Positions 1 to 63,200 of a stretch of 64,000 nucleotides of DNA are shown here, piece by piece. A model generated the notes under the pieces. The model was not told the DNA's origin. It worked only from the letters and a program-made list of their open reading frames with translations, and did no database searches. The DNA comes from Bugula neritina (taxonomy: Eukaryota > Animalia > Bryozoa): assembly GCA_964035545.1 (NCBI GenBank), contig OZ037768.1:8836741-8900740 (forward strand). The letters are read 5' to 3'. The first letter of the stretch is position 1, and every line of letters begins with the position of its first letter. The translations under genes and the position numbers were made by a program.

Positions 1-278
1 ATAGTTAGTTAGGCCATAACTCACAACGTTCTATTCAAAAATTACTAGTTTGCCTGAGTTGTCTCCTCATGGTCATAAACACGCAACTCGCGAAGTTTAT
101 AAGCGCCTATAGCCTGAATTTGAAATAGGCTATCCTAAGAAAGGCTTAAAATTGAAAATTATTTTATTTTTTGTTTAATAATAAAAAAATTGCAAATTTG
201 CTAATATAAATTATACTTACTGACTTGTCAATATAATTATTTGCGCGAATAATTCACAGTTTCTATAGCGACAAATAC

Positions 279-286
279 ACCGGAAA
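279..286 (+). promoter_or_regulatory. Putative ETS-type (CCGGAA) promoter motif upstream of MDH1B
   Basis: ACCGGAAA about 165 nt upstream of the ATG in a locally CpG-containing patch; the same motif occurs in reverse in the RABIF/Prx intergenic core. Confidence 0.3.
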
Positions 287-448
287 CCTTCGCAAGTAAA
301 CTTTAATCTGCATATGGCATTGGCTTGATAGTTGTAATATTGCTTTAAAGCAAATTTTATTAGGGTTTAAATGTTTGTTGCAAAGTATTTTATGTCCTAA
401 AAATTTGATTAAATTAGGCTCTGAAGCAGTTCTATCAAAAATCGACAG

Positions 449-26466: not shown

Positions 26467-27798
26467 TTCATTCATTGATGAAGCTATTGATATAAAAACA
26501 ATCTAAGTCTCTACAATGGTGTAACTCAAATAACAAGAGTTATATACCAAATGTACAGGAAATGGCAGCTGTAACAAGTGTCAAGTGACAATAATATTAA
26601 TTGAACCAACTGTTGGCGAAGTGTATCAGTATGACTACAAGTTAGAGTAAGAGGATGAGTATCGTTCAACTTTATGTGTGAGTTGTGAGCATCTGTATAA
26701 AAGATGTTTAGCCTTATTACTAAACTGGCCCGGTCAGCTAGCTTTGCAATAAGCCCACAAAATATACTTCCGATTCGTCTTATTGAGTAGATCTACCAAG
26801 TTTAGACTATACTTGAAAACAACATTGATAATTGTGTGCATAGTTATTACCAGATTATTTAAAATATGATTTTTTTATGAGTTATGAAAAAACTTTATTT
26901 ATTTTAAAAATTTACTAGCTTGAATGAATCTATTAGGTACATCGGTACAGTCAGTTGACGTGGCTAGATGGCGATAAGGCTATTTGACTGACTTCGTTGC
27001 ACTATTCACGATATAGTTGAATCATTCTAGGGTACCAGAAAGATAAACATTTTATTGCATAATGTAGTTAAATATTTTTTTTACCTTCAAAAATTTTAAA
27101 TATTTTGTAGATTTTAAAATTTATTGTAAAAATAAATTGTTATTTAATGCAATCAGTTCGTTTTTTGTTTACCCAAATAATTAAAAGCAGACGCTTATAA
27201 TCGATGAACACAAAATAATATCAGTTCAGTGCTTATAAGAATGCACAAGCTATACTTACAGAGTTATCTCCCTAATAAGATTAAAAAAACGATATACTCG
27301 TATACTCACTCCAATTTTGGTATAGCTACCTTGTTTAACATACTATTATTTTGTTCCAGTATTGTAGAAGCTTCAGATTTTGAGAGATTATAGATAGCCT
27401 AATAACCACGTGCAACAAAAGCAACTAAAAAATGATTTACATTAGTTTTGTGCTATTAATTGTAATATTTTATTACACATCAACACCATATTTCAGGCCT
27501 GTAATTGCTATATTTTATGGTTTGGATCTTGAGTCTGAAGCTTGGATGTTCGAGTGCTTATAATGGCCTACCTAATATGTTAAATGCATGGGTAAGACCT
27601 GTTTGTACGATAAAATTAACACACTGTTTAATGGAACATGACAATTTTTATATTGGCTCTACCTACCAAGAAACAACTTCTAAAACCATAATAAAGAGTC
27701 AATCATTCATAGTGTGTTTATGCTCATGCAAAAGTTATAGTGCATCTTATGGGCACCCAAGCTGTTCTTTACCAATATAATATATAAATATTATTCAC

Positions 27799-28297
<499 letters not shown>

Positions 28298-31193
28298 CAA
28301 GTAGGCCTACACACATGCACACACGTACCACATGTGCATGCATAGTGCATACACAATTGTAATTACCTATCGGCCTACAGTAAACCACTATTTATGTTAA
28401 ATAATGCTCATGTGACGTAGGAGATAGGACACATTAAAGCTAAAACTGTGATTTCAACACATAAATGTTGCATGTGATTTCAACATCACTATTGATGTTT
28501 CAAATCATTGACAACTGTTAACAACTACAAGATTGATGGGTCAAATATTATAAATTTATGATAATATTATTTCAAAACCCTGTATCAATACAGTAAAAGT
28601 TCAGTAAAATTATGGGTTTTTTTAGATATCAAGTATGGAATCTGCATACAGCCTGATAACCTTTTGAATATCCTGATAACCATTTAGTGTTTACATCAAC
28701 TTGTTGGTATATTTTCTCTTGTGTGATTGCAAATTAATAGAATCTACTGACATAATATTTTGAACACATAATTATTCTTCTAAAGGTCATGACATCTGTT
28801 CAAACTACAACACACCCAATAGCGAATCAAGCTATATCAAGCATCAAGTTCATATTTTGTGCCATATTTGAGTCAATTTCACTCATCAATAAGTGCTATC
28901 CATTTAATATTGCAAATTTTCAAATGCATTTGAACCAAAATTTATGTTAATTTAGATCAAAACTGTGCCAATCGATGAGTGATTGAAAAAGAATATTGAA
29001 ATCTGCCAATGTAACCAAAGCCTTTTTTTAAAAAACTTATGATATTTGCCTATAAATTCCAATAACAGCAGTGCAGGCCAACAGCATTTTATGCTTTTTA
29101 TAGATGCAATAAAAGCTTCAAAAATACTGCTGGTTTTTAAATCATAAGTCAGTTTTTTAATCTACCAGTGTGGAACTAAGTTCAAGATACCACATCAACA
29201 TCAAATTTAATTATCAAAAGATAGGTTTTGTTCCATAACTATTTATAATATTCTAAGACGATGATAGAAAGTAAGGCTTTAATAATATTATGATATTACC
29301 ATATATGAGAAACTCTGGGCCAGATCAGCATAATAATATTGTATTCACCTACTCACAATGAGCAATTATTTGGGTAATGACAGTACTGCCTGTTCTGATT
29401 TGAACTTTGAATTTCGAGGCTAAAGGCTTCTGTATATTTCTAAAATATTATAAGTCTAAATTACAAAAATTCTTAAATTGTACCTCAATTTATTGTAACT
29501 AATTACATTACCATGTATATATTATGTATTCAATGTGCTCTCTTTGCAACACTTTATTGAAAACCTTGGATATACATCCATTTTCCGGCAAACTTATCAG
29601 CAGATATTTTAGTTTGTACCAAACTTTGCATTTTAATTGTTTCTACATGTGATTTAATGTCTTGTTAGTTGACGTATCATTTACTGATTTTATATGTGGA
29701 TTGCTTTAATGGTGTTTTATATCACTTTCAACTGTGAGTTTAGTATCAGTGAGGAAAAAGGAAGTTCAGAATTTAGCTTGGTTAACTATGACATGTTGTT
29801 AAACAGTAGCTTGAACTAGACCATTGGAATAAACATTTTAAAACGAAACTGTAACCTCTTATCATAAAACACTGCAACAGGCTTGGTGTCTGCAAACTGT
29901 TTACATGATCAAATAAGCTAGTGGTACTTAGAAACTTTTTATGTGACATAGGTCATCTTATTGCTAGGGCTGTATTTCAAGTAGGCAGTTTCATTCTATG
30001 AAAACCTCCCTGATTTCCTTGCACAAAGACTCTCCAGATACTTGGTAAGCTACTTGTATAAAAACCAGAACATGTCATAAATTATTATGCTAAGCTATCA
30101 TTATTGTTCAAAAGTATACAACATTAATATTGAATTTCTATTGTATGTACTAAGCAATTATATAAATAAATTAAATTGTGCAGTATATAATATTTTTAAA
30201 TTTGAAATAATGCTGGCTAAGAAGTAAGTTTTGACTATACCTTTGCTGTCATTGGCTAAATAAGGATACAACCTATTAACCAAAAACATAGCGTAAATAC
30301 TTGTGATATTATATGCACTCATGTTGAGCAGGAGTCATGCTTTGGCTGCTTAACACATTAGGCAGGTCATATAAAAATGTTTAGCCGCTGCATTATGCAA
30401 ATCTTCCAATTATCAAGCAATTATTAATTTTGTAATGTGGCTTCAAGTTTTCAGGGGTGAGAGATTAAGATATTTAAACTTGCAATTCACTATTGCAATA
30501 AGTTTTTAGGAAGCTAAAATTTAAAGTTAATTGGTAAGCTTTTTATTTTGTAAAAGCATGAACCAGCACAAACTCATAAAGATGATAAAAATTTCAACTG
30601 CTGCACTTTTTGTACAGCATAACCTTCCACTACCAACAACTCTATGAATGAGTATTCAGAGCTTTAATAAAAAGTATATTATATCTTCTCAGCTGTTACA
30701 AAGTTAAGCAGCAAAAATTCAACATTATATAGTTTTATGTTTAATTTTAACAGAGCAATACACAGTTAATGCAGTCGTGTTACTAACATATAGTTGGGTT
30801 TTATGCTGCAAAAGGTTTAGGACACACTTTGTAGTTCTGCTTGTTATTTTTGGTTGGAATTATAGCACGGTAGTTAAAAAAGCTTAAGCCTGTGGTGGCA
30901 TATTTCAATTTGTATTGCCAAGACTACATCGCATATATTATATCCACCTGTACAACTGGCATGAGCCAACAGCCTTAAAGTTATATTTGATATACAGTGT
31001 AACCGCCAGTTAGCATACTGGTAAATAAAGATCTTATTACCTTTAGTGGTAGTAAATGAGCAGAGCATTAAATGCAGATTAAAAAAATTGCAGACTGTTG
31101 CTGGAAACAAGTTTTAGCTCTTGCAAATAAACAAAAAAAAGGTTTTTGATTTACATTGCAACACTGAACATCTTTTTATAGTATAAAACTTTT

Positions 31194-36151: not shown

Positions 36152-38815
36152 ATGGCTCAAAGAACATCCCAGATCGTAAACAATTTGGTTGAGCAAATAG
36201 CATTTGAGTGCTCTGTATGCCAGGAATCTATGAATGTAGAATTGAGGCTTTACCCATGTCTCCATTACAACTGTACGAATTGCATCCGTGAGTTGTCATT
36301 TTATTAAACAGCTCAACTCTCTGAAAAAAAAACTTTTGTAGAAGTACTTGCAGATGTACAGGTGAAGGTACTTGTACATTTATAGGTTCATGTTTACTTT
36401 TTATACAAAATAAACATTTCCGTCAGGCAAATAACTCACAGATGAATCCCTATAATTGGATTGTGATTCTTAGTATGTTTTGAACTTGCATAACAACTAA
36501 TTGTACCACATTTTAGAGCAGCTATTACAAGCCTCAACACTAGATGAAGGGACGTTTTCATGCCCCGAGTGCAGAGCAATAGTGCTAGTTCCTCCTGAGG
36601 GACTCCCCCTGCATAGAGATGCTCAACGTGTCAATGAGCAGCTCAAAAATGCTCAAAGACGACCAAGAAGACAGACAAGTCACCCTCAACAACAAGCAGG
36701 TATATAGTTGGGAATAAAATTAATCTATATTGTTCTATTTTAAGTATACATTTTTTTATATATCGCAGAAAGGCGCTATAAACTTATACTTGCATTTTGT
36801 TGTTTACAAAATTTCATCAAAAGTTGTTGTAAATTATGTATACAACTGGGGTTATAAGCCACTATATAATTATGTTTCCACACATTTTTATCAAACTTAT
36901 ATATTACATTGCACATGTTATAGTAGTTTAAATACGTTTTTAATATTTTTGTATCGACAATTTTTTTTCTTATAGAAAATGCTGATCAACCTCAGGAAAA
37001 TGCTGAGTTAGCGACGTACGTTAACATGGTTGAGAATGACAAAAGATGTGACATAGAATGTCATCAATCTTGTCAGAGCTGTGGAACAAAACTTCTTGAA
37101 ATGACTAAGAAGACATTTTGCAATATTGGAGGAGCACAGTGTGCCAACCAAAAGAATAGAGCACAATATCTTCTCCTTCCTTGCTGGTAAATAATCACAA
37201 TCACATTTGCATTATTGAGTAGATAGAAATGGAAGATATACTCAAACAAATTAACAAATATTTTGAATAATTAGCAAAATATATAAAATTAAATAGCTGT
37301 TTCAATCAATGTTGGAGAAAATTTAAAAATAGTATATGTTTAGTGAGAATCTTATTAAGTCATATTATTTATTCGCTATATCATAAAATTGACCTTGATG
37401 AAAAATACTTTTTTATTGGATACTCTGTCATTATTAGATAGCCATGTAACTAGCTAGTTAAACTTGCTATAGCTAATATATAAAGTATGACACCCTCTAG
37501 GTTCTAATTCTAGTAGTGCTGCAGATATATTTGTATGAAAGATACATTCTAAGCAATATGTAACTAACATCTATCTCTATGTTGTAGGGTGTTCTGTCTT
37601 TTGGAAGCTACTTACCCGTGTTTAGCAGTTTTTAATCCAGAAAGACGAGTAGGTGGCGAGGTAAAAGATGTGGCTAAACTGAGAACTGATGCTTGGAAAG
37701 CCGTGTTGAAATCACAACACCCAATTTTCCCATACTGGTTTAGAATTACATGGTCTATTTTCATTTTGATCAGTTTTCTCCTGTTCACTGGCATTGATTT
37801 ATATAACATGTTTAAATCTAATAGATTTATTTTCTTTGTTGTGGCTTGTTCTATTGATGGTCTATTGACTATTTTGTGGCTAACATTTGTCATTCTCAAC
37901 TTTACTAAATTTAGACCAGGTGAACCAAATGAAGTGATAAAAGAAGGCAATGGGGTGTCTCATTTTCACATGGAACAAATTCAGCAATTTCTTACAGAGC
38001 TGAGTATTTATCCCCAGTTATGTGTTGCTTCGATAAACCTTTCTCAGTTTACAATTTTTTCTATACTTCCTTTTTCAGTTTCAGCAACAATTCTGTTGAT
38101 TGTATTTGCTTTGAGAATTTTTTCCCTTGTGAAATTGAAGCAGTTGGTAGAGCAGTATTTTGTCAGGCAATTAGTTTCCTTTATTGGAAATTATCTGATT
38201 GTCATCTACTTGATTGTTATGCTGTTACTTCATGGCATGGGTGCTGAAGACCTCTCAGGGTTTGTGTTCTATTCTACAGCTATATCCCTTTCAGTTCTTA
38301 TTACGATTTCCAACACCCTTAATCAGGTCATGTTTTATTTATCACATCTGTATGAAATATCCTTGCAGTCTGGCCAGAACTTGCTCAGGTTAAATGAAGG
38401 TAATGTTCAGCAAGTTTTGCTTACTGGCTCAAAGCTGACCAGATATGAAACTTTTCACAAAAATCTGTACACAATGACTATTCCATCCTACGGCACTGCC
38501 GTGTTTTTTTGGACATTACCTTCATTGGCTGTCTTACTTGTTCTACTATTTATAACAAGTGATTTTGTAGAGTTGCTGGTATTTTGTGGATATTATGCAA
38601 TTCTTCTTGCTGTTAATTACAAAGCTTTTCTTATTTCCTCTTCGGCTTGCTTTACATTCTTTGTTTTATTGGCAATGGTGGGCTGTGTTTGCTTCCTTGC
38701 AATGTTTTTCCTGGCTGTTATTTATGCACCAATAGTTGCTATTGTAGTGATTGCCTGTTTTTGTATAATGGTTTGCAGTAGCAGAGATGACAACAATGAC
38801 AATCAGAGTTACTGA
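36152..38815 (+). CDS. Gene A: RING-HC finger + Cys-rich linker + about 10-TM membrane protein, 585 aa; exons 36152-36287, 36517-36699, 36976-37186, 37588-38815
   Basis: CSVC..CLHYNCTNC..CPECR RING split over exons 1-2; GT-AG introns in phases 1,1,2 give one open frame of 1758 nt; last exon is highly hydrophobic. Confidence 0.85.
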
Positions 38816-40267
38816 ATGCATTCATAATTATTTTTACTTGAGAAATTTGAAGTTATTGAAGCATATGATATAGTTTTTCATCATAATTAGTTTATTCAAT
38901 TCTAAAATAAGCATTGCATGTATGGAGCAAAGTGAACTGCATATTAGTTTAGGTTTGACTGATTGATAAACCAGAAATTATATTTTATGGCATGTAATAA
39001 GCAAACTATAATAATTGTTTTCAATTTTTTTGTAATTTTAAAATAAAATAATTTAAAGTATGAAACAAAGCTGTTTTATGCTGAAACTAAAACAATATTA
39101 TTACGCTGAGCTGTAGAAACTGCATCATATATCCAAAAATTACCTGCTGCTAGTCTACTGTATTGTATACAGGAGTAAAGCTGGTTATAAGTCTTAGCAA
39201 ATAGTGCTAAATGGCTTTAACAGTATATTTAGCAGATTAATGCTGACTGCTAGCTGGCATTTATGTAGAATGCTCTCTGATTGGTTATATTCTTCCGGAT
39301 ATAACTTTATATAGTACTATGTGATTGTAGGAGATTAGTTAGATTCACTAATTAGAATTCAACATTTCCTTTTATTGAATTTAACAGCGTGAAATCTAAA
39401 AGTACACATAATAGTTCTTCAACAGCAAAATATATAGGAGACTAACATTCTTTAATAATGATTATTTGTTCAACAGTAAAAATGTAACACTGAAACACCG
39501 AAGAAACCTCAACGACATGATACATAACTATACAAAATAATGTTTAACAACACAAACAAGCAAACATACCTTTGTAATTCTAACTCGTACAACACAGTAC
39601 TATCTTTATCTAATTTATAAATATTATGATAACCTCTTCCAATCTGTAACCTTTCAATTCAACTGCTGGATGAGGACTGATTATTTTGAGAACTAAGCTA
39701 GTAGTATAATATAATAGCAGCCGAAATAGCTCCCCTCCCCATTCATCAAGGCAGAGGTAGCCCAGGCATGCCATATCATTTATAAAAGCTACAGATGACA
39801 TAAAAATTAATTACAGTATATGTAGTAATGGGGGTACAGGGGAACAATTTATTACTTATTAGATATATCATTTTATTACTAACATACAAAATTAGTAAAC
39901 CTGTTGCCATTTGGCTCAATAGAAAAGTTGTCAGTCAAATCCCCAGGATTGCATTAAACCTCTAAAGAATTATTAGTTCTAAAAAAGTGCACTCGATTGC
40001 CTGAAACTTCAATATATTCTAAATATTCCGAGAAAAGTGTAACAGCAATTCTTCAATAAATAATTTGAAACTAAAGTTTTGATTTAGCAAAAATAATTAT
40101 AAAAGTACTTATAGTTGCAATTCATTTACGTAATAGCTACTGTGTAATCTTGTAAAGCGTGCTAAAGTATAATACATATAAAATAGACAGTCTTCTTGAT
40201 TTTAGAGCAACTGTCAAATTAAAATTTATAGCAATTTAAGCAATATTGCTTCTATTTTTTTAGATAG

Positions 40268-40268
<1 letters not shown>

Positions 40269-40354
<86 letters not shown>
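40269..40354. repeat. (TA)n microsatellite
   Basis: Directly visible. Confidence 0.98.
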
Positions 40355-40357
<3 letters not shown>

Positions 40358-41796
40358 GAGTATATGCTCAGCAATGACAATCAGTGACTAAGCTCTAACA
40401 CATGGTCACAAACTCAAGCTGTCAGCATTTTGAACGGCTCATGACTCCTAGAGTCACTCGAGCTCTAAAATTAACAGCAGAGGTTTTAGGATAGCAATCC
40501 CCTTTTATACTACATAATGCATTATTGGTTCATGTATAGCTCCCTTGTTTTATGAGAGTTGATCTAATAATATTTTGTATTACTTTGCAAGCTGCTTAAT
40601 GTTAGTGAGTAACAAGGAAGCTCTGAGTTAAATCAGGTTAACAATAATTATGCTGGTGAATATTATAAGCTGTAACTAATTGCCATTAAAATAAACAATT
40701 TAAAATGAAATTGCAACCATTTATTATAACTACTTGCTAGGTTACCTGTATAATAACATAATGAGGCATAAACTGTTAGCAGTTAGATTAATTAATCACT
40801 ATTATTGTTTGAAAGTATATATATACAACATTGTTTAATTAAATTAGCAATATTTAACTTCTATTGTATGCTAAGCAATTGTATAAACTAATAGAATTGT
40901 GTGCATTATTTTTAATGAATAAAGATGCTTATAATATATTATTTTTTCAAATTGCAAAAGGCTATAGTGAATGCATTTATATTCAGCAAAATTCATTCTC
41001 CGCCAGCTCAACACATCAAACGGGTCACATAAGAGTCAGCCATTGCACTTCGCAAATCTTCCAATTATCAGGCAAGTATTAATTTTGTAATGTGGCTTTA
41101 TAAGTTTTCGTGCTTTCAAGAAAAACATAGTGTGCATGCTTACTGCCAGCTTGATCATGTTTTAAAACTCCATTGAGTATTCAGAATTTTAATAAAAAGT
41201 ACATAATGCTTTCTCTGCTTTTATAAAATTAAGCAGCAAAAGTTGAATGTAATTTTACGTTAGATTTTTTCAGAATAATACCCAATTAATTTTTAGTTTT
41301 GTTCCTAACATATAATTATTTGAGTTTCACGCTGCTTAACAGCTTCAACCCTATAGCTGCAGTTTTGCTTGTTATTTCATTTCGGAATTAGCACGGTGGC
41401 CACGTTCTACTTGTACTTTCTTCCTTTGAAAATGTTAAATATTATTTGCTGGTGGGCAAAGTTCTAAAAATATAGAGAGCTTTAAATTTAGAGTAGGAAA
41501 ATAAGATTCTTCACACATTTCAACATTTACAAGGGTTTATTGAGTATTGCATATTTACACAGACCTTATTAAACGTGCTTAAAAAAGCTTGCAGTAATAA
41601 CTAGCCATATTACACCACTATAAATTGCTTTGTCTAATGATTTCAACCTGAAATACTCATAATTTCAGATATTCGCATACAACAACTTTTCAAAACCATG
41701 TCTTTGTGTGGACTGCCTAATTAAGTTTCTGTATATTAAGGTATATATAAGGTATCTGCATAATATTATTATTGATACAAATTATTGCAGATCATT

Positions 41797-44060
41797 ATGA
41801 CTCAAGTAGCACCCCAGATGGGAAACAATTTCCTTGAGCAAAACACTTCAAGACAACCAGGAGGACAGACATTAAATAACTCTCAACAACAAGCAGGTAT
41901 GTAGTTAAGGATGAAATTAATTTATGTTATACTTATTTTAAGTATACATTTCTTTACATATCACAAAAAGCCAATATGAACTTATATACTTGCATTTAGT
42001 TGTTTACAAAATTTCATCAATAGCTGCTGTAAATTATATATTACTATAATTGGTGTTGTAAGTCACGTATTATATAATTAGGTTTATTTGCATTTTTTGT
42101 ATATTACAAACAGTTTGAAGACATTGCTAGTATTTTTTATTTTCTTATATAGAAAATGCTGATCAACCTCAAGAAAATGCTGAATTAGCGGCATATGTTA
42201 ACATGGTTGAGAATGATAAAAGATGTGATATAGAATGTCATCAATCTTGTCAAAGCTGTGTGACGAAACTTCTTGGTATAATAGCGAAGACATTTTGCAA
42301 TATTGGAGGGGCACAGTGTGCAAAGCGAGGCTCTGGCGTGCAATATTGCGTCCTTCCTTGCTGGTAAATAATCTCCATCATGTTTACATTGTTGGGTAGT
42401 TAGAAATAGAAAGTATTCTGCACAAATCAACAAATACATTAACACTAAATTTTATATGAAGTTAAATGCCAGTTTCAATTAAACTTGAAGAAAACATTAA
42501 AATAGTGTATTTTAGTGAGAATCGTTAACTGCCCTAGTAGCCAAACACAATATTTCAAAATTTTCGTGAGTTGAATTTTTTTATTTACTGTATCTTGAGA
42601 TCAATTGTGACCAGAAAGACTATTTTCTGGCTATCTAATCACCGTAAAATAATCATGTAACTAGCTGCAGTTAAAGTCTTCGTAGCAATTATATAAACTA
42701 GTTATAGCATGGCTTTTTCTGGGTTCTAATTCTCGCAGTGCTGCAGATATAATATTGTTATGAGAGATAAGTTCACAGTTCAGGTACTTTTTAAATAATA
42801 TGTAACTAATATCTATTTCTATGTTGCAGGGTGTTCTGTCTTTTGGGAGTTATTTACCCTTGTTTAGCGGTTTTCAATCCAGAAAGAAAACTAAGTGGGG
42901 AAGCAAAAGATGTGGCTATGCTGAGAACTGATGCTTGGAAAGCCGTGCTTAAATCACAACACCCAATTTTCCCATACTGGTTTAGAATTACGTGGTCAAT
43001 TATCATTTTGATCAGTTTTTTCCTGTTCACTGGCATTGATTTATATAACATGGTTGAATCTAATAGATTTATCTTGTTTGTTGTGGCTTGTTCTATTGAT
43101 GGTCTATTGACTATTTTGTGGCTAACATTTGTCATTCTCAACTTTACTAAATATAGACCAGGTGAACCAAATGAAGTGATAAAAGAAGGCAATGGGGTGT
43201 CTCACTTTCACATGGAACAAATTCAGCAATTTCTTACAGAGCTGAGTATTTATCCCCAGTTATGTGTTGCTTCGATAACCTTTTCTCAGTTTACAGTTCT
43301 TTCTGTACTTCCTTTTTTAGTTTCAGCTACAATTCTGTTGCTCGTATTTGCTTTGAGAATTTTTTCCCTGGTGAAGTTGAAGCAGTTGGTAGAGCAGTAC
43401 TTTGTGAGGCAATTAGTTTCCTTTATTGGAAATTATCTGATTGTCATCTACTTGATTGTTATGCTGTTACTTCATAGTGTAAGTGGTGAAGACCTCTTGG
43501 GATTTGTGTTCTATTCTACAGCTATATCCCTCTCAGTTCTTATAACGATTTCCAACACCCTTAACCAGGTCATGTTTTATTTATCACATCTGTATGAAAT
43601 ATCCTTGCAAGCTGGTCAGAACTTGCTCAGGTTAAATGAAGGTAATGTTCAGCAAGTTTTGCTTACTGGCTTAAAGCTGACCAGATATGAAACTTTTCAC
43701 AAAAATCTGTACACGATGATTATTCCCTCCTATGGCACTGCCCTGTTTTTTTGGACATTACCTTCATTGGTTGTCTTTTTTTTCCTATGTATAAAAAATG
43801 ATTTTATTGAGTTGCTGCTGTTTTGTGGATATTATGCACTCTTTCTGATTTTTAACCACAAAGCTTATTTTGTTTCCTGTTCAGCCGGTTTTACTTTGTT
43901 TGTTTTATTGGCAGTACTGGGCTGTGTGTGCTTCCTTTCAATATTTTTCGCGGCTCTCATTTCTGCAACAATTGTTGCTATTATAGGAATCCACTTGCTT
44001 TGGAAAGCCTGTGAGGCCTATGCTGAAGTTCAAAGGGCTCTGAATACGCAGCAGGTCTGA
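41797..44060 (+). CDS. Gene B: RING-less paralogue of gene A, 513 aa; exons 41797-41896, 42153-42363, 42830-44060
   Basis: Same acceptor/start context (TGCAGATCATTATG); exon 1 MTQVAPQMGNNFLEQ-NTSRQPGGQTLNNSQQQA joins the start of A exon 1 to the end of A exon 2; 211-nt middle exon as in A; open frame of 1542 nt. Confidence 0.85.
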
Positions 44061-45590
44061 GTATTTTAGGGAATGAGTGCAGTAGTTTGGAAGTCTAACA
44101 TTTGGAGTTATGTCCCCAACTCTAAGCTCGATACCTCCAAACTGCTGCACATATTAGAGTTACTGAATACACGCATGATGTTTTAATTTTTTATTCCATG
44201 ATTATTTCACTTCATTCTAAAATGATTATTAGAGCAAAGTCCACGGCATACCTACTTATCCCAGTTTGAGCGATTGAAATTATATTTTATATAGTGTGTA
44301 AGTAGCGAACTATATTTATTGTATGTGATTTTCAAATAAAATATTTTAATGTGTGAAACCGTGTTCCTTTATACTAAAATTACAAAAATTCTAGTGCACT
44401 GAGCAATGAAACTGTTTGTATAATTTATATAGATATATGTATAAAACGAACTGTTAGCCTACCAAAATAGCAGCTAGTGTTTACATTGTATTGTGCTCAA
44501 TGGTTAAACAGGTTATAACTTATAAGCTTAAGCTAATAAGGCTGAAAGTTATTTTAAATATGTAAACAGCACATATGTGCACAATGTGGGAGATATTCAT
44601 TGCTTGTAAGATATGCTATTTTATTACAAATTTACAAAGTTAAATAAAAAGTGAATTTTTTGCCATTTAATTTGATAGAAAGGTTGTCAGTCAAACCAGC
44701 AGGGTCGTATCAAAACTCCAAAGAATTATTAGCTAGAACAAAGGGCAAGTATAATAACTTTAAATTACAATAATCTATACATAATGAGGAAAAGGTATAA
44801 CAGCATAAAATAGTTAAATAAATATTCTGCAACTAAAATCATAATTATAATCTCAAAAAAATAATTTTAGAATTTATTATAGTTACAATTCATACGTACA
44901 TACATGCATACATGCATGCATGCATACATACATACATATAAAGCACATACTTCAATAAACTTCAAAGTGTCACATACTACTGCTGGTTTATGCTCCAAAC
45001 TTGTAGGTTGCCTTAAAAATATTAGCCTGTTGGATTCATAAAGTATTGTTGATTACGGCAATTCACCGCTTGATCAGCTGATTCAAGCCACTTCCAGGCA
45101 TGAGCTCGTCTTATCAGCATTCTCTCTTTATGATTTTTTACAACTTATAAAAGCTAAACAGCATTTACTGAATTTTATGTGAACATTCAATATAGTAGCA
45201 TTAACAGCTTAAAATATTCTACCGAAAGGGAATAAATTGATAAGTCAAACACTGCGTAATTTACCAACATTCAATGTTTTGTCTTCCAACGCAAAAACAA
45301 CCGGTTGGGAAATACTGCACTGGGAAATTTATTTGTCATGGAAAATAAGTCTAAGAAAGATATCCAATAATTGTTATGCATTTTTGCACATCTTTGGTCT
45401 AAGCAACCAACTAAATTCAGGCTCATATCCATAACTAGTTGCAAGAATCAATAATTAGATATGTTTGACAAAGCTGTGCAAACTCCGAAAGTCTCAGTTA
45501 TAAAAGCTTCTCTTTAGTGTACATTGCCCATCTCTCCTAATTTGATTGTTATTACAGTAAGTTGCAGGCATCTGACTATTTGAAAGCAGT

Positions 45591-48500
45591 ATGCCGTCTG
45601 GTTTACCTCCCTTTGAGTGTCCTATCTGTTTCGAAACTGAACATAGACTGAAATTATTTCCTTGTCAGCACTATGCATGTTCGGTGTGCGTAGGTAAGTT
45701 AAAATAGGAAGACTTTGACATACAAGCCTCATTCTATAATCTGTAAGATTTTCGTTCAAAATAAGTTTATCTTTTTCCTTATAGATAATTTACATTTGAG
45801 TTCTAATTGATGATAATTTTTTATTCAAAATCAAGAATCTTACAAAAATGATTAGATCTATAGTAGTGACTGTAGTGACTGAAGCAAAGCTACTTAGAAT
45901 TTGTTTGGCAGCACAATGCCTTCGTATGACAGTGTGTAACCTACTGAGCATTGTAATGTTAACTACTCAAGATTTTTAACAAAATAAAACTAGGTAGCTC
46001 TTTGATTTTGAGCTTTTTGTGCTATTATATTCCAAAAATGGCTGAGAGTATAGAATGAACAAAAAATGTATGGACAAGTATGCAACAAGCTTACAGACAT
46101 AACTTGGAAATAAACAACTGCTAACTCTAAATATTTTTTGCTTAAAGTATAAACTATGCCATGGCACTTCTAGGCATAAGCTTTAAGCCAAAAGTACCTG
46201 TTTCTTAGCAAAATTGAATTAATACAACTCTATTTATAGTAGCTTCAAAGTAAATTCATGAGTAACTTTTAACACTAACATGTCAACTGATAAACATTAT
46301 GGTTTACCATAACTCTTGTAGGCTATATGCAAAATAAAATTGTTGTCGCACATTCAACAGCATTGATCGATCTGCAATGTTGTTTTGCTTTTAGAAAATT
46401 TACCTAGCCATGGAAATAATAGATCCTTTTCATGCCATGAGTGCAGAAGAGAAACGCTTTTTACAAATTTGCCAGACTATCGTATGGCCAACAATATGAA
46501 TGAGGAATTTATGAGAACATCGCAAAACGCAGCTGGTAAGTGACGGTATAATGTTGAATTCACAAGCTGCATTATTACAAGTCTTTTAATATATCTACTT
46601 GCAAAGGTAGCTATTATGATATATGTATTAGAGCACCTGTGTAGGATGTTGCTAGGGTCTAAATTATACTAGTACTGTAATAACAAAGTAGTTGTAGTAA
46701 AATTTCTAATGCTAAAAGTAATATTAGCTAATGATACAGAGTTTGGAAATGTGCAGAAGTATGTGTGTGTGCGTGTGTGTGTGTGTGTGTGCTCGTGTGT
46801 GTTCGAGAGTGTGTTTGTGTGTAAATTTGGCAAAGAATTACTTTATCTGAACCCTTTTGCTACATATGAAATTATTTTAGTAGATACACCCGAAGAAGTA
46901 GTTGATGGTGCTGCAGAGATGAGATCAATTGAAGAGTACCACAAGTTGATACAGAAAGAGAAACTATGCAGCTTAGCATGCCCACCAGCTGCATATCAAT
47001 GTGGTCAAGTTTTCACCAGAAATATGCAGCAGGCATTTAACAACATTGGTCATAAATGTTTTGATACGAAGGGTGAGCAAGCAAAGCTCAATTTCATTGG
47101 AGTACTAAAGGTGCCCTTCAGGTAAAATGCTGTATGAATTCTACAGTCAAGTTATATCCTCGTTTTTAAAATGAAACAATAAACTGTTGGAATGAATTCA
47201 ATATACTTTTTACATAGTATAATATTGTCTATCTAAATTTATAACATTATTTTATATATTTAATGGTACATGTTATCATATAAAATATATTTCACTATAT
47301 TACAGAATTAAAATTAAAATTAAGCAGATTTAAACATATTATAGTTTCCATTGTTATACAAAAGCAACTTGTTTGCCCCATGTTGTTTTCTATAACAGTA
47401 TGGAGTTATCTTCTATTGTAGGATATTGAAAACACTTGAAACAGCTCCACAATGTGCAAGGATTTTTACTAACCATGAAATCTTAACAGAAGAGTCAAAG
47501 AAGACTGGCTCTGATTTAAGGACAAAGGCTCTCTCTTTAATGATGAAAAATCGCCCAGAAAACCCATATCGTTTGTCCTGCTTTATAAAGATCTACCTTT
47601 TGTTTGCGACAATGTCTTTGCTAACCAATATAATTTGTGATAGTCTCCAACTAAGACAAAAAGTACACATAATTCCGACAGCAACGGCTTGTATTTTCAA
47701 TGCCTTATTTTTAGTATTGTGTCTTGTGGCACTTGTGTACTATAGCTGCTGCCGCAAAAATTTAAAATATATCGGTACATTTTTTAAATTAAACTTTTTA
47801 ATTGAGTTGAGTGCCTATCCTCAATTGTTAGTAAGTGCTATGCTTTTAAAACGCATTGACACTTTATTAATTTTTGTCCCATTCGTTTTTTCTTCGGTTG
47901 TCCTTTTTTGTGCCTGGGCTTCTCGCTTAACCATAGTAATACAAGAATGCAAACCCTGTATCCATCACAATATTTTCAAGAAGTATATTTTTGTTCATGT
48001 GGGAAACATGGTGTGCATTATTTTATTAGTAGCAGTATCAGTGATTGCCTCTGATAGGTTAAATACTCAATTAATTTTTTTAAGTGTAGCTATTCTTTTA
48101 TCTGCTATCTACTGTAATTATATAATGTTCTACGTAGGATATTTATATGAAATAACTCAAGCCTCGGCCTTATTCTTGATATCACACTATAAATGCCCTC
48201 AGGACATGAAACTGAAAGCTAGAGAATTTTTAGATGACCTCATGTTCAATCTTCATGCTTTTCACAAAAATTTTTATGGGTTGATATTTTGGTTCTTTGA
48301 ATTACATGTATTACTATTTCCTCTTTTCATCATACTTCTGTTGATATACTTTCCAGATCCTAGCATGACTGAGCTTATATTACTAGGGATTTATTGCATT
48401 GGAAGCATACTTATAAACTATAAAGGTTTTTTAATGGCGTTAGTGTCAGCCTGTAAAATTAGTTGTGTTATTTTATATATTTTTCAAGTTTTCATCACTG

Positions 48501-48772
48501 CCTTAGTCATTTATCCTGTTTACATCTTACTGCTTGTGCTCGTATCGCCGTTTCTCATTTGTGTATTAGTATTTTCGGCTTGTGGTAAGCTAAAGGCACC
48601 ACCAGCACCTACAGATGCAGAAGATATTGGGCTTGATGATATTGGCAACTTGCCAGAAGAAAATACCCTACAAGCTGGCAATGTCAATAATGTAACAGAA
48701 AGAAGTGAGGAGGGGAACATGTTGATAGAGAACAACACAATGCAAGACGATCTGGAATCAAGCCATGACTAA
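45591..48772 (+). CDS. Gene C: divergent RING-HC + about 10-TM paralogue, about 610 aa; exons 45591-45693, 46395-46535, 46884 (or 46881)-47121, 47422-48772
   Basis: CPIC..CQHYACSVC..CHECR RING; same intron phases (1,1,2) as gene A; shared TM-region motifs FLxELSxYPQL, MFYxxxLYEI, FHKNxY, NYKxFL. Confidence 0.85.
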
Positions 48773-50016
48773 ATGATTTTACATTTTTTTAAACTATTAT
48801 TTTAGAAAATGTCATGCATGTGTTCATTATTTATGTATAATTTATTTTAGTGTTCGAGTAGTTAGGAGTGCTGCGGTTTATGCTACAAAATAATAAACAT
48901 ATTTATTTGGATATCTAGCCTTGTTTTTGAAAAATAAAATAAACACCTCATTGTTTTAATGACCTTTGACATGCAAACAAGCCTCATTGCTCTGTCAGTT
49001 ATAAGCTTCATGAAATTAATTCAAAATCATACACAAGTTGAACTCCCCCCCCCCATTATGTCTATGATGATTTAGAGGCAATAACTTACAGTGTCAGACT
49101 CATAAAACTATTAAACATGTTTATAAGAAACTGCACAGTTAAAATTATATGTAGAGAAATGAAAGAGACTTGGATTATAGCTAGAACCTGCTGCAATAAA
49201 GTACATATTACCAACCAGGTAGCAGTCGGGTTTCATTGACTTTAATCTCCACAGAGTATGTTGTAGTATTAACACAGAAAACTTAAAGTCTTATTATTAT
49301 AATCATATATATATTCCTATTTTCAGCCACTGCACTAGTCAAATGTTTAGCTGTATGAAATCAATTGCATGATAAAACTTTGTGAGGAATTAAACGAAGT
49401 GTTAATATTATGTTTCAGTTATTATAGTAGATTTGCCTATATTTATTCATACAGTATCTACTACTCAAAATTAGTGATCACAGCACAAGCTACAAGATAA
49501 GTTAAAATATATTAATTACCTAATGAAATGTTTTAGATATATTATATAATATGAGCAATTATCCAATACAAATAAAAACTAACAGTTTTATGTTACAATC
49601 TGTATGAGTAAGAAGATCATAATGTGTATGAAAATTGCATTATAGTGAAGCTTACTTACAACTATAACTTTAATAAAATAAAATAATCATGATGTGAATT
49701 CCTACAATAAATTAAAACAGCTACTTATGTTCATATCTAGATAATTATTTCTTAAAAGTCACAATAGAAAATGTCATCCAAATACTAGACTAGTAATGCT
49801 AAAAAAAGGTAGGGATGATTTTTGTTTCAAAATAAATATTGAGAAAAATATGTTCACCGTATAATATTTAAACTCAACACTGCACTACAATTTAAAAAGC
49901 CTAGTAACACTTTCTAAAGCATGGTAACAGTATTTTTTACCTCAAAGTTTCTATAAATTTACTAGTAGAAAATATCCTTCACACAGCTGTTGACACTTGT
50001 AAAAATAAATAGTATA

Positions 50017-62522: not shown

Positions 62523-63200
<678 letters not shown>

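Follow-up and report, generated by a model that had tools for sequence, protein, structure and literature searches.

Membrane-Bound RING Ligases and the A, B and C Genes

Membrane-bound RING ubiquitin ligases (E3s) are known in several forms. MARCH6/Doa10 and the other MARCH ligases carry their RING, which is of the RING-CH (C4HC3) type, at a cytosolic N-terminus ahead of many membrane helices. RNF5/RNF185, RNF170 and BFAR possess an N-terminal RING-HC and are anchored by 2-4 transmembrane (TM) helices; to our knowledge, they contain no conserved polar intramembrane motifs. Hrd1, gp78, RNF139/TRC8 and RNF145 are polytopic RING E3s in which a RING-H2 lies C-terminal to the membrane domain. Doa10, Hrd1 and TRC8 function in membrane-protein quality control and lipid homeostasis. 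A 64-kb stretch of the genome of the bryozoan Bugula neritina (contig OZ037768.1, positions 8,836,741 to 8,900,740; hereafter the window) contains three tandem genes, A, B and C, whose products resemble each of these groups in part and belong to none of them.

The proteins encoded by A and C have an N-terminal C3HC4 RING, a Cys-rich linker and a large helical membrane domain. The order of the parts is that of the MARCH ligases, but the ligand order is C3HC4 and the membrane domain is unrelated to theirs by Pfam. In contrast to RNF5/RNF185, RNF170 and BFAR, the family has a conserved domain of 8-10 helices and ~400 residues that is under selection even where the RING is lost. Unlike Hrd1, gp78, RNF139/TRC8 and RNF145, its RING is an N-terminal RING-HC, and there is no Pfam match to the membrane domains of these ligases. 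The RING-HC signature, including an Arg after the last Cys, recalls the TRIM proteins; however, the B-box, coiled coil and C-terminal PRY-SPRY or NHL domain of TRIMs are missing, and a membrane domain follows instead. An earlier, sequence-only reading of this DNA had already placed the architecture outside the MARCH, Hrd1/gp78/RNF139/RNF145 and RNF5 types, and the searches described below returned no confident match to a characterized family. While polytopic RING E3s are an established kind of enzyme, an N-terminal RING-HC on this membrane domain is a new architecture. Overall, we favor, with moderate confidence, the reading of the family as a membrane RING E3 restricted to one lineage, with a membrane domain that is probably XKR-like.

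Gene Structure and Transcription

The window is AT-rich eukaryotic DNA (~32% GC) from an assembly of 216 Mb in 321 contigs. Eleven open reading frames (ORFs) of at least 110 aa occur in the entire 64 kb. Three of them, all on the + strand, belong to A (37589-38815, 408 aa), B (42831-44060, 409 aa) and C (47426-48772, 448 aa), and the remainder either belong to other genes or are artefacts of microsatellites or of the antisense strand. Each of the three genes finishes with a single exon of 1.2-1.35 kb that codes for a polytopic helical domain. Exon models were built by hand by reading the DNA, using canonical GT..AG borders, and they extend the genes to 36152-38815 (A), 41797-44060 (B) and 45591-48772 (C), all on the + strand (Table 1). 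The introns of A are in phases 1, 1 and 2, those of C are identical and those of B are in phases 1 and 2, so the phases are kept across the three genes. These models agree with the sequence-only reading in that there are three same-strand paralogues. Together with the Pfam results below, they also bear out the layout it proposed for A and C, namely four exons, a RING with the Arg retained, no B-box and a Cys-rich linker.

The splicing of the RING exons to the membrane exon, also part of that proposal, can be read from RNA contigs. The comparison covered 42800-48799, which holds the membrane exon of B and gene C, and the exon borders of A are predicted. The contigs derive from one public run labelled RNA-Seq, which contains ~16% of the sampled words of this interval and whose record describes a metagenomic "symbiont metagenome." They are ~95% identical to the window, and strand and expression level are not readable from them. 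In gene C, the joints 45693|46395, 46535|46881 and 47121|47422 coincide exactly with the predicted GT..AG borders and confirm all three introns. Exons 2, 3 and 4 are united in a single contig of 965 nt, and exon 1 is connected to exon 2 by a separate joint. Contig depth is zero in the introns of C, and the exons are covered. Exon 1 reaches upstream to at least 45244 as a 5' untranslated region (UTR). In C, the RING exons are spliced onto the membrane exon, so that the outcome named in the sequence-only reading as refuting it, RING exons not joined to the TM exon, is contradicted for this gene.

Gene B is also transcribed. Its contigs extend over 42972-43647 and 43741-44794, and the latter continues for ~730 nt past the stop codon, giving a 3' UTR to ~44794. 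Just 3' of the stop, contig depth is ~3-fold over the segment 44071-44137, and on either side of this segment many contigs of the DNA run depart from the window. The segment probably represents a small dispersed repeat within the UTR. Throughout, the RNA contigs differ from the window by ~4-5% and show several small UTR indels, including a 45-nt gap at 44416-44462. This level of mismatch suggests that they come from a sibling species or a very divergent haplotype, not from the sequenced individual.

The RING Finger and the Cysteine-Rich Linker

Sequence, Pfam and structure searches were run exon by exon. The RING of gene A has the form C-x2-C-x11-C-x-H-x2-C-x2-C-x16-C-x2-C-R, and that of gene C is the same with x10 and x14 in place of x11 and x16. 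Both are split after the sixth ligand by a phase-1 intron. The eight zinc ligands (C-C-C-H-C-C-C-C, in cross-brace spacing) are invariant in five genes from three species, and in the alignment of exon 2 the F, C and C around the last ligand pair are likewise invariant. In RINGs that bind the ubiquitin-conjugating enzyme (E2), a hydrophobic residue before Cys2 and a linchpin Arg or Lys after Cys8 are E2-contact residues. Both are found here: the residue before Cys2 is hydrophobic (C-S-V-C and C-P-I-C), and the RINGs end in C-P-E-C-R and C-H-E-C-R, with the Arg present in four of the five aligned genes and replaced by Pro in one homologue. When the exon-1 halves of the RING were scored alone against the zf-C3HC4 models of Pfam, they came close to the gathering scores, with 20.0-23.1 bits for PF00097 (cut-off 21) and 21-23 bits for PF13923 (cut-off 27). 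The RING exons gave no RINGv match, and the His is the fourth ligand rather than the fifth, so the finger is not a RING-CH (C4HC3).

The linker exons of A and C contain no B-box and have no Pfam match of any kind, even at E<=10. A reading of the linker as a B-box is therefore ruled out. The linker motif, an acidic segment, R-C-D and C-x2-C leading to L-L-P-C-W, recurs at the loci of four other family clusters. An additional TM helix across the junction of exons 3 and 4 was also considered for A and B, where LLLPCW is continued by VFCLLEATYPCLAVF, and was set aside as not conserved, since the segment is charged in C.

Distribution of the Family

The family appears to be undescribed and lineage-restricted: to date, its members have come only from one bryozoan genome and from metagenome or read-assembly contigs of marine or estuarine origin. 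Within the 216-Mb source assembly, single-protein and profile searches found no copies beyond A, B and C. A word-index search led to four unnamed ENA proteins, and a HMMER profile run exhaustively over 1.84 billion cluster representatives yielded 34 clusters, half of which (17) had E<=1e-30. None exceeds 433 aa, as expected of ORF calls made from a single exon. The sources of 24 clusters were checked, and all were ENA, MGnify, JGI or Logan assemblies, including TARA ocean and host-associated "BRYA16" metagenomes; none came from NCBI or UniRef, and none had a descriptive name. The protein library searched does include NCBI animal proteins, such as the seahorse XKR9. A related-locus search with an alignment of seven sequences added only two short metagenome loci. 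These results agree with the earlier proposal of an unnamed, lineage-restricted family of membrane proteins with an N-terminal RING-HC.

The complete arrangement is not confined to the window. Contigs L009, L017 and L024, the last from a different read set, encode RING exon 1, RING exon 2, the Cys-rich linker and the membrane exon in that order. The linker ends in P-I-W, and exon 2 includes a long spacer of low complexity. Downstream of the membrane exon, L009 and L017 have another pair of RING exons. The same is true of L010, where the pair closely resembles that of C, indicating that the genes are in tandem there too. On the C-side branch of the family, RING exon 2 has ~370 codons (L009:1172-2320, L017:1229-2374, L024:694-1809), compared with ~45-60 in the genes of the window. 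Past the last C-x2-C, it consists of a low-complexity spacer rich in Ser, Gln and Asp. The RING thus lies at a very variable distance from the membrane.

Loss of the RING in Gene B

Gene B differs from A in its first exon, where ~450 bp corresponding to ~36198-36647 of A are deleted in frame, removing all RING ligands and intron 1. The deletion joins at GAGCA, a sequence present in both exon 1 and exon 2 of the A type, and it keeps reading phase 1. From these junctions, the loss of the RING reads as a single genomic deletion between the two GAGCA copies.

The remainder of B is constrained. Across the first 300 codons aligned between the membrane exons of A and B, synonymous divergence (dS) is 0.149 and nonsynonymous divergence (dN) is 0.047, giving a dN/dS ratio (omega) of 0.31. 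The membrane domains of both genes are therefore under purifying selection. Over the last 36 codons, omega is ~1.1, and this end of B evolves neutrally. A pseudogene reading of the genes was rejected on account of the intact frames, the conserved phases, the omega of 0.31 and the spliced RNA. The constraint on B, which has no RING, implies a role for the membrane domain by itself.

This constraint also bears on whether the RING is catalytic. If the RING were a non-catalytic zinc module for dimerization or protein binding, the family would consist mainly of transporters, scramblases or channels regulated through their N-termini, and the maintenance of B without any RING would be readily understood. 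Two further observations point the same way and weigh against a ligase. One homologue has Pro in place of the linchpin Arg. In addition, two of the most distant clusters, L007/L021 and L008, show no RING within 2.6-3.1 kb upstream of the membrane exon, so that they either lack it or have it further off. In L010, L016, L018-L020, L022 and L023, the upstream sequence is too short to judge. However, deeply diverged paralogues and species have retained all eight ligands together with the hydrophobic residue preceding Cys2 and the Arg following Cys8, a pattern typical of RINGs that bind an E2. A non-catalytic RING is for this reason considered improbable.

Divergence of A, B and C

The membrane exons of A and B are 81% identical, while those of A and C share only 23-25% identity. 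A maximum-likelihood tree built from 26 membrane domains of nearly full length shows A and B as a recent pair, inside a clade of 15 rows (98/97 support) that includes P0001-P0012 and excludes C. Gene C is a long branch among other clusters. Since A and B are nested with homologues from other sources and C falls outside, the split between A and C is ancient and does not reflect fast divergence.

The sequence-only reading had inferred tandem expansion and fast divergence and, from these, a role in immunity or self/non-self recognition, in which tandem paralogues would evolve rapidly and diversify for variable ligands. The tandem arrangement, the low identity of A and C and the apparent restriction to one lineage would fit such a role. 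On the other hand, an expansion is hard to reconcile with three copies in a 216-Mb genome, and rapid diversification with an omega of 0.31 between the recent duplicates A and B. Moreover, homologues from other sources stand between A/B and C, which occupy opposite sides of the tree, and both the motifs and the architecture are conserved across species. The extracellular loops are short, and the residues that are conserved map to the membrane helices and to loops in the cytosol. An old divergence combined with three copies per genome is unlike an immune or allorecognition array. Neither the fast divergence nor an immune function finds support, and the latter is very improbable.

The Membrane Domain

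Sequence-based and Atlas searches with the membrane domain returned nothing usable. Pfam gave only sub-threshold noise for the membrane exons of A, B and C at E<=1 (MerE and FAM186) and nothing consistent for 37 family members at E<=0.1. The family profile had a single noise match among PDB sequences (E=2.3). The ESM Atlas, searched by features (with C, and with A among named clusters only) and by structure, likewise yielded nothing of use.

Structure prediction was more informative. With seven sequences, AlphaFold2 (AF2) gave a poor model with a mean predicted local distance difference test (pLDDT) of 60.6. With 37 sequences, pLDDT rose to 88.2 and the predicted template modelling score (pTM) was 0.81, and the model is all-helical. 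It suggests approximately 8-10 membrane helices, made up of six clear ones, a short pair and a long C-terminal stretch (Table 1). The sequence-only reading had proposed about ten TM segments. The polytopic nature of the domain holds, and the count stands only as an approximation from AF2 and hydropathy. A, B and C each contain all the polar motifs from that reading (LRTxA, FLxELSxYPQL, NxxMFYxxxLYEI, FHKNxY and NYKxFL), which for the most part are invariant or nearly so in the homologues.

Helix 3 has a mean hydropathy of 0.15. Its Glu, E137, is conserved in 31 of 31 sequences, and its YPQL motif is invariant in the first seven. Conserved buried polar residues (E137, R176, N245, Y255, K291 and N343) are found in the membrane helices or in motifs of the interhelix loops. 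A cytosolic N-terminus is assumed from the lack of a signal peptide and from the abundance of Lys and Arg in the segment 14-48. With this orientation, the long loops after helices 2 and 6 would face the cytosol, and the C-terminal Cys cluster would fit a cytosolic location.

Possible Relationship to the XKR Proteins

The XK-related (XKR) proteins, lipid scramblases that include XKR8, XKR9, XKR4 and CED-8 (Pfam PF09815), expose phosphatidylserine on dying cells. Their fold comprises two related repeats with eight TM helices in total, and each repeat includes an intracellular helix that is partly inserted. Their C-terminal tail contains a caspase site and plugs an intracellular pocket. In gene C, the acidic tail includes D-x-x-D-like strings, and in gene A it is short. 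The sequence-only reading had singled out XK/XKR proteins as a lead because of the PQL motif in helix 3. This remains the best lead, supported by the comparison of folds and not by that of sequences or profiles.

A structural aligner was run with the model against 48,161 PDB chain-cluster representatives. Matches to generic helix bundles were numerous and covered 100-130 residues, but the only rows that spanned the whole domain (41-349) were XKR9, XKR8 and XKR4. These represent three separate clusters, and a fourth XKR entry appeared on re-ranking. The values for these rows were 10.3, 244 and 5.4 for XKR9 (7p16_A), 10.0, 247 and 5.4 for XKR8 (8xej_X) and 9.3, 236 and 6.2 for XKR4 (9boj_B). Among the top 50 rows, no polytopic protein other than an XKR was aligned over >200 residues.

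Details of helix 3 and of the topology provide further likeness. In the XKRs, TM3 is long, highly conserved and kinked at a conserved PQL, and it carries conserved acidic residues (Straub et al., 2021, PMC8298096). It is so hydrophilic that hydropathy methods overlook it, and both long loops of the protein are intracellular (PMC8298096). The third helix of the family is also long, hydrophilic and the most conserved, with an invariant Glu and a central PQL, and the topology inferred for the family, with the N-terminus inside and the long loops cytosolic, would be the same.

Several results weigh against a relationship. Foldseek found nothing in the PDB at E<=0.001, its best rows being G-protein-coupled receptors and ABC transporters with a TM-score <0.26. 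A shape search of the Atlas was also without significant result. PF09815 matches none of A, B and C at E<=1 and none of the 37 members at E<=0.1, although it does detect two canonical XK-related loci elsewhere in the same genome. Two XKR alignments were built from these loci and their database relatives, and hhalign of the family profile against both gave probabilities of 0.1-0.4%, even in permissive local mode (-mact 0). When the family hidden Markov model was applied to 20 XKRs, the scores were no better than those of reversed or shuffled controls. In addition, the loop between helices 2 and 3 has 18 residues and is too short for the IH1 helix of XKRs. The conserved Glu lies five residues before the Pro, as opposed to three in the canonical XKR of this genome (FLESAPQ). 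Finally, a divergent PF09815 subfamily in the same genome is without any PQ, indicating that PQL is not a strict marker of XKRs. Compared with XKRs, the family has an additional hydrophobic C-terminal helix of ~60 residues, an N-terminal RING and a Cys-rich module and lacks IH1, and similarity of sequence or profile is undetectable. Given the negative sequence and profile tests, the short loop, the Glu-Pro spacing and the PQ-less subfamily, the family has not been filed within PF09815.

Two XK-related loci of this genome were noted in passing. The canonical gene has multiple exons, encodes FLESAPQ and lies at G000:C1:26655567-26657032. The divergent gene, at G000:C2:10847871-10848764 (L012:1447-2757), is intronless and encodes 436 aa without PQL (PF09815, E 2.4e-15). 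It has six database relatives only, all of them unnamed metagenome or read-assembly ORFs.

Alternatively, the membrane domain may have a new fold without any relation to XKR and serve a membrane RING E3 as an anchor for substrate binding or oligomerization, as in other polytopic E3s. The XKR rows would then reflect the generic packing of about eight helices, and PQL would be a chance coincidence of three residues. Against this, XKR had been named a priori from the motif and then proved to be the sole whole-domain match among 48,161 chain clusters, with no other polytopic protein aligned over such a length in the top 50. Furthermore, the PQL occurs in the same third helix, which in both cases is unusually hydrophilic and the most conserved. 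A new fold is thus the less probable explanation, though one with a substantial chance of being correct. The balance leans, somewhat better than evenly, toward a genuine XKR-like fold or remote homology.

Proposed Function

For a membrane RING E3 with a probably XKR-like domain, a mode of action can be proposed. In the full form, represented by A, C and the homologues, a cytosolic N-terminal C3HC4 RING would be followed by a variable spacer, a juxtamembrane module rich in Cys, ~350 residues of helical membrane domain and finally a hydrophobic C-terminal extension with the Cys cluster. Based on its intact ligands and E2-contact residues, the predicted RING would recruit E2~ubiquitin. The Cys-rich module may bind zinc or be palmitoylated beside the membrane. 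The membrane domain would place the RING on a particular membrane and contribute an activity of its own, either handling lipids as XKRs do or binding a membrane substrate. Ubiquitination could in this way be coupled to the sensing of lipids or membrane state, to scrambling or to the binding of membrane substrates. B would rely on its membrane domain only; it may, without a RING, partner or regulate A, or it may work independently. The E3 activity, the cytosolic orientation, the XKR relationship and any lipid-related function are all inferred.

A bolder version would have the ubiquitin ligase covalently fused to a lipid-scramblase module of the XKR type, with the membrane domain either sensing lipid scrambling or performing it. 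The state of the membrane, for instance the exposure of phosphatidylserine, would then be converted into ubiquitination of neighboring proteins or of the scramblase itself, with B as a regulatory or dominant-negative subunit. No paper on a RING-XKR fusion was found in the literature, and this version is regarded as tentative and less likely than not.

Features of the Window

The coordinates of the exons and of the predicted helices are collected in Table 1. Simple repeats are present both beside and within the genes. A compound microsatellite of (CA)n then (GA)n at 27791-28388 gives rise to two artefactual minus-strand ORFs of 165-169 aa. A (TA)n run occupies 40252-40380 between genes A and B, and intron 2 of C contains a (TG)n run at ~46753-46804. 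A minus-strand ORF of 112 aa overlaps the membrane exon in both A (37612-37950) and B (42854-43192) and is most readily explained as a side effect of the duplication together with codon bias. Two unrelated flanking exons are on the + strand. One, at 1551-2270, has an ORF of 239 aa with the look, by eye, of a Rossmann domain of the malate/lactate-dehydrogenase type, and the other, at 62544-62915, contains an RNA-recognition motif (RRM).

Table 1. Exons of genes A, B and C (window positions) and predicted elements of the membrane domain (residues of the AF2 model).
Feature	Position	Strand	Description
Gene A exon 1	36152-36287	+	Start codon and first six zinc ligands of the C3HC4 RING; phase 1 end, GT donor
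Gene A exon 2	36517-36699	+	Final RING ligand pair F-S-C-P-E-C-R with linchpin Arg; basic Gln-rich spacer
Gene A exon 3	36976-37186	+	Cys-rich juxtamembrane linker, R-C-D-x2-C-H-x2-C-x2-C ... C ... C ... LLLPCW
Gene A exon 4	37588-38815	+	Whole helical membrane domain (408 aa), C-terminal Cys cluster, acidic tail
Gene B first exon	41797-41896	+	A-type exon 1 start fused to A-type exon 2 end
Gene B linker exon	42153-42363	+	80% identity to the linker exon of A
Gene B membrane exon	42830-44060	+	409 aa, 81% identity to A; C-terminal Cys cluster gone
Gene C exon 1	45244-45693	+	5' UTR from RNA contig start 45244; ATG at 45591; first six RING ligands
Gene C exon 2	46395-46535	+	Final RING ligand pair F-S-C-H-E-C-R and spacer
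Gene C exon 3	46881-47121	+	Linker, Cys-poorer than that of A
Gene C exon 4	47422-48772	+	Membrane domain (448 aa), long acidic C-terminal tail; transcript runs beyond 48798
Amphipathic helix	26-42		LRTxA motif
Membrane helix	49-77		
Membrane helix	80-106		
Membrane helix 3	125-153		Hydrophilic, most conserved
Membrane helix	156-182		
Membrane helix	188-217		
Membrane helix	224-252		
Cytosolic helical region	254-307		LYEI and FHKNxY motifs
Short hydrophobic helix pair	310-322, 326-342		T-S-D turn between
Long hydrophobic helix	344-405		62 residues, with a hydrophobic stretch of ~53 residues

Significance

The family adds a new architecture to the repertoire of membrane E3s, built on a ~400-residue domain that is invisible to Pfam, to searches of PDB sequences and to language-model searches. 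If the XKR-like fold is genuine, the XKR superfamily reaches far past what sequence comparison can detect, and a direct link between scrambling and ubiquitination is suggested. Should a fused scramblase and ligase prove true, it would represent a new coupling of membrane asymmetry to ubiquitin and a very divergent branch of the XKRs. The constrained, RING-less B provides a built-in genetic separation of the two activities. More generally, the family illustrates the extent of conserved but unannotated protein space in bryozoan genomes.

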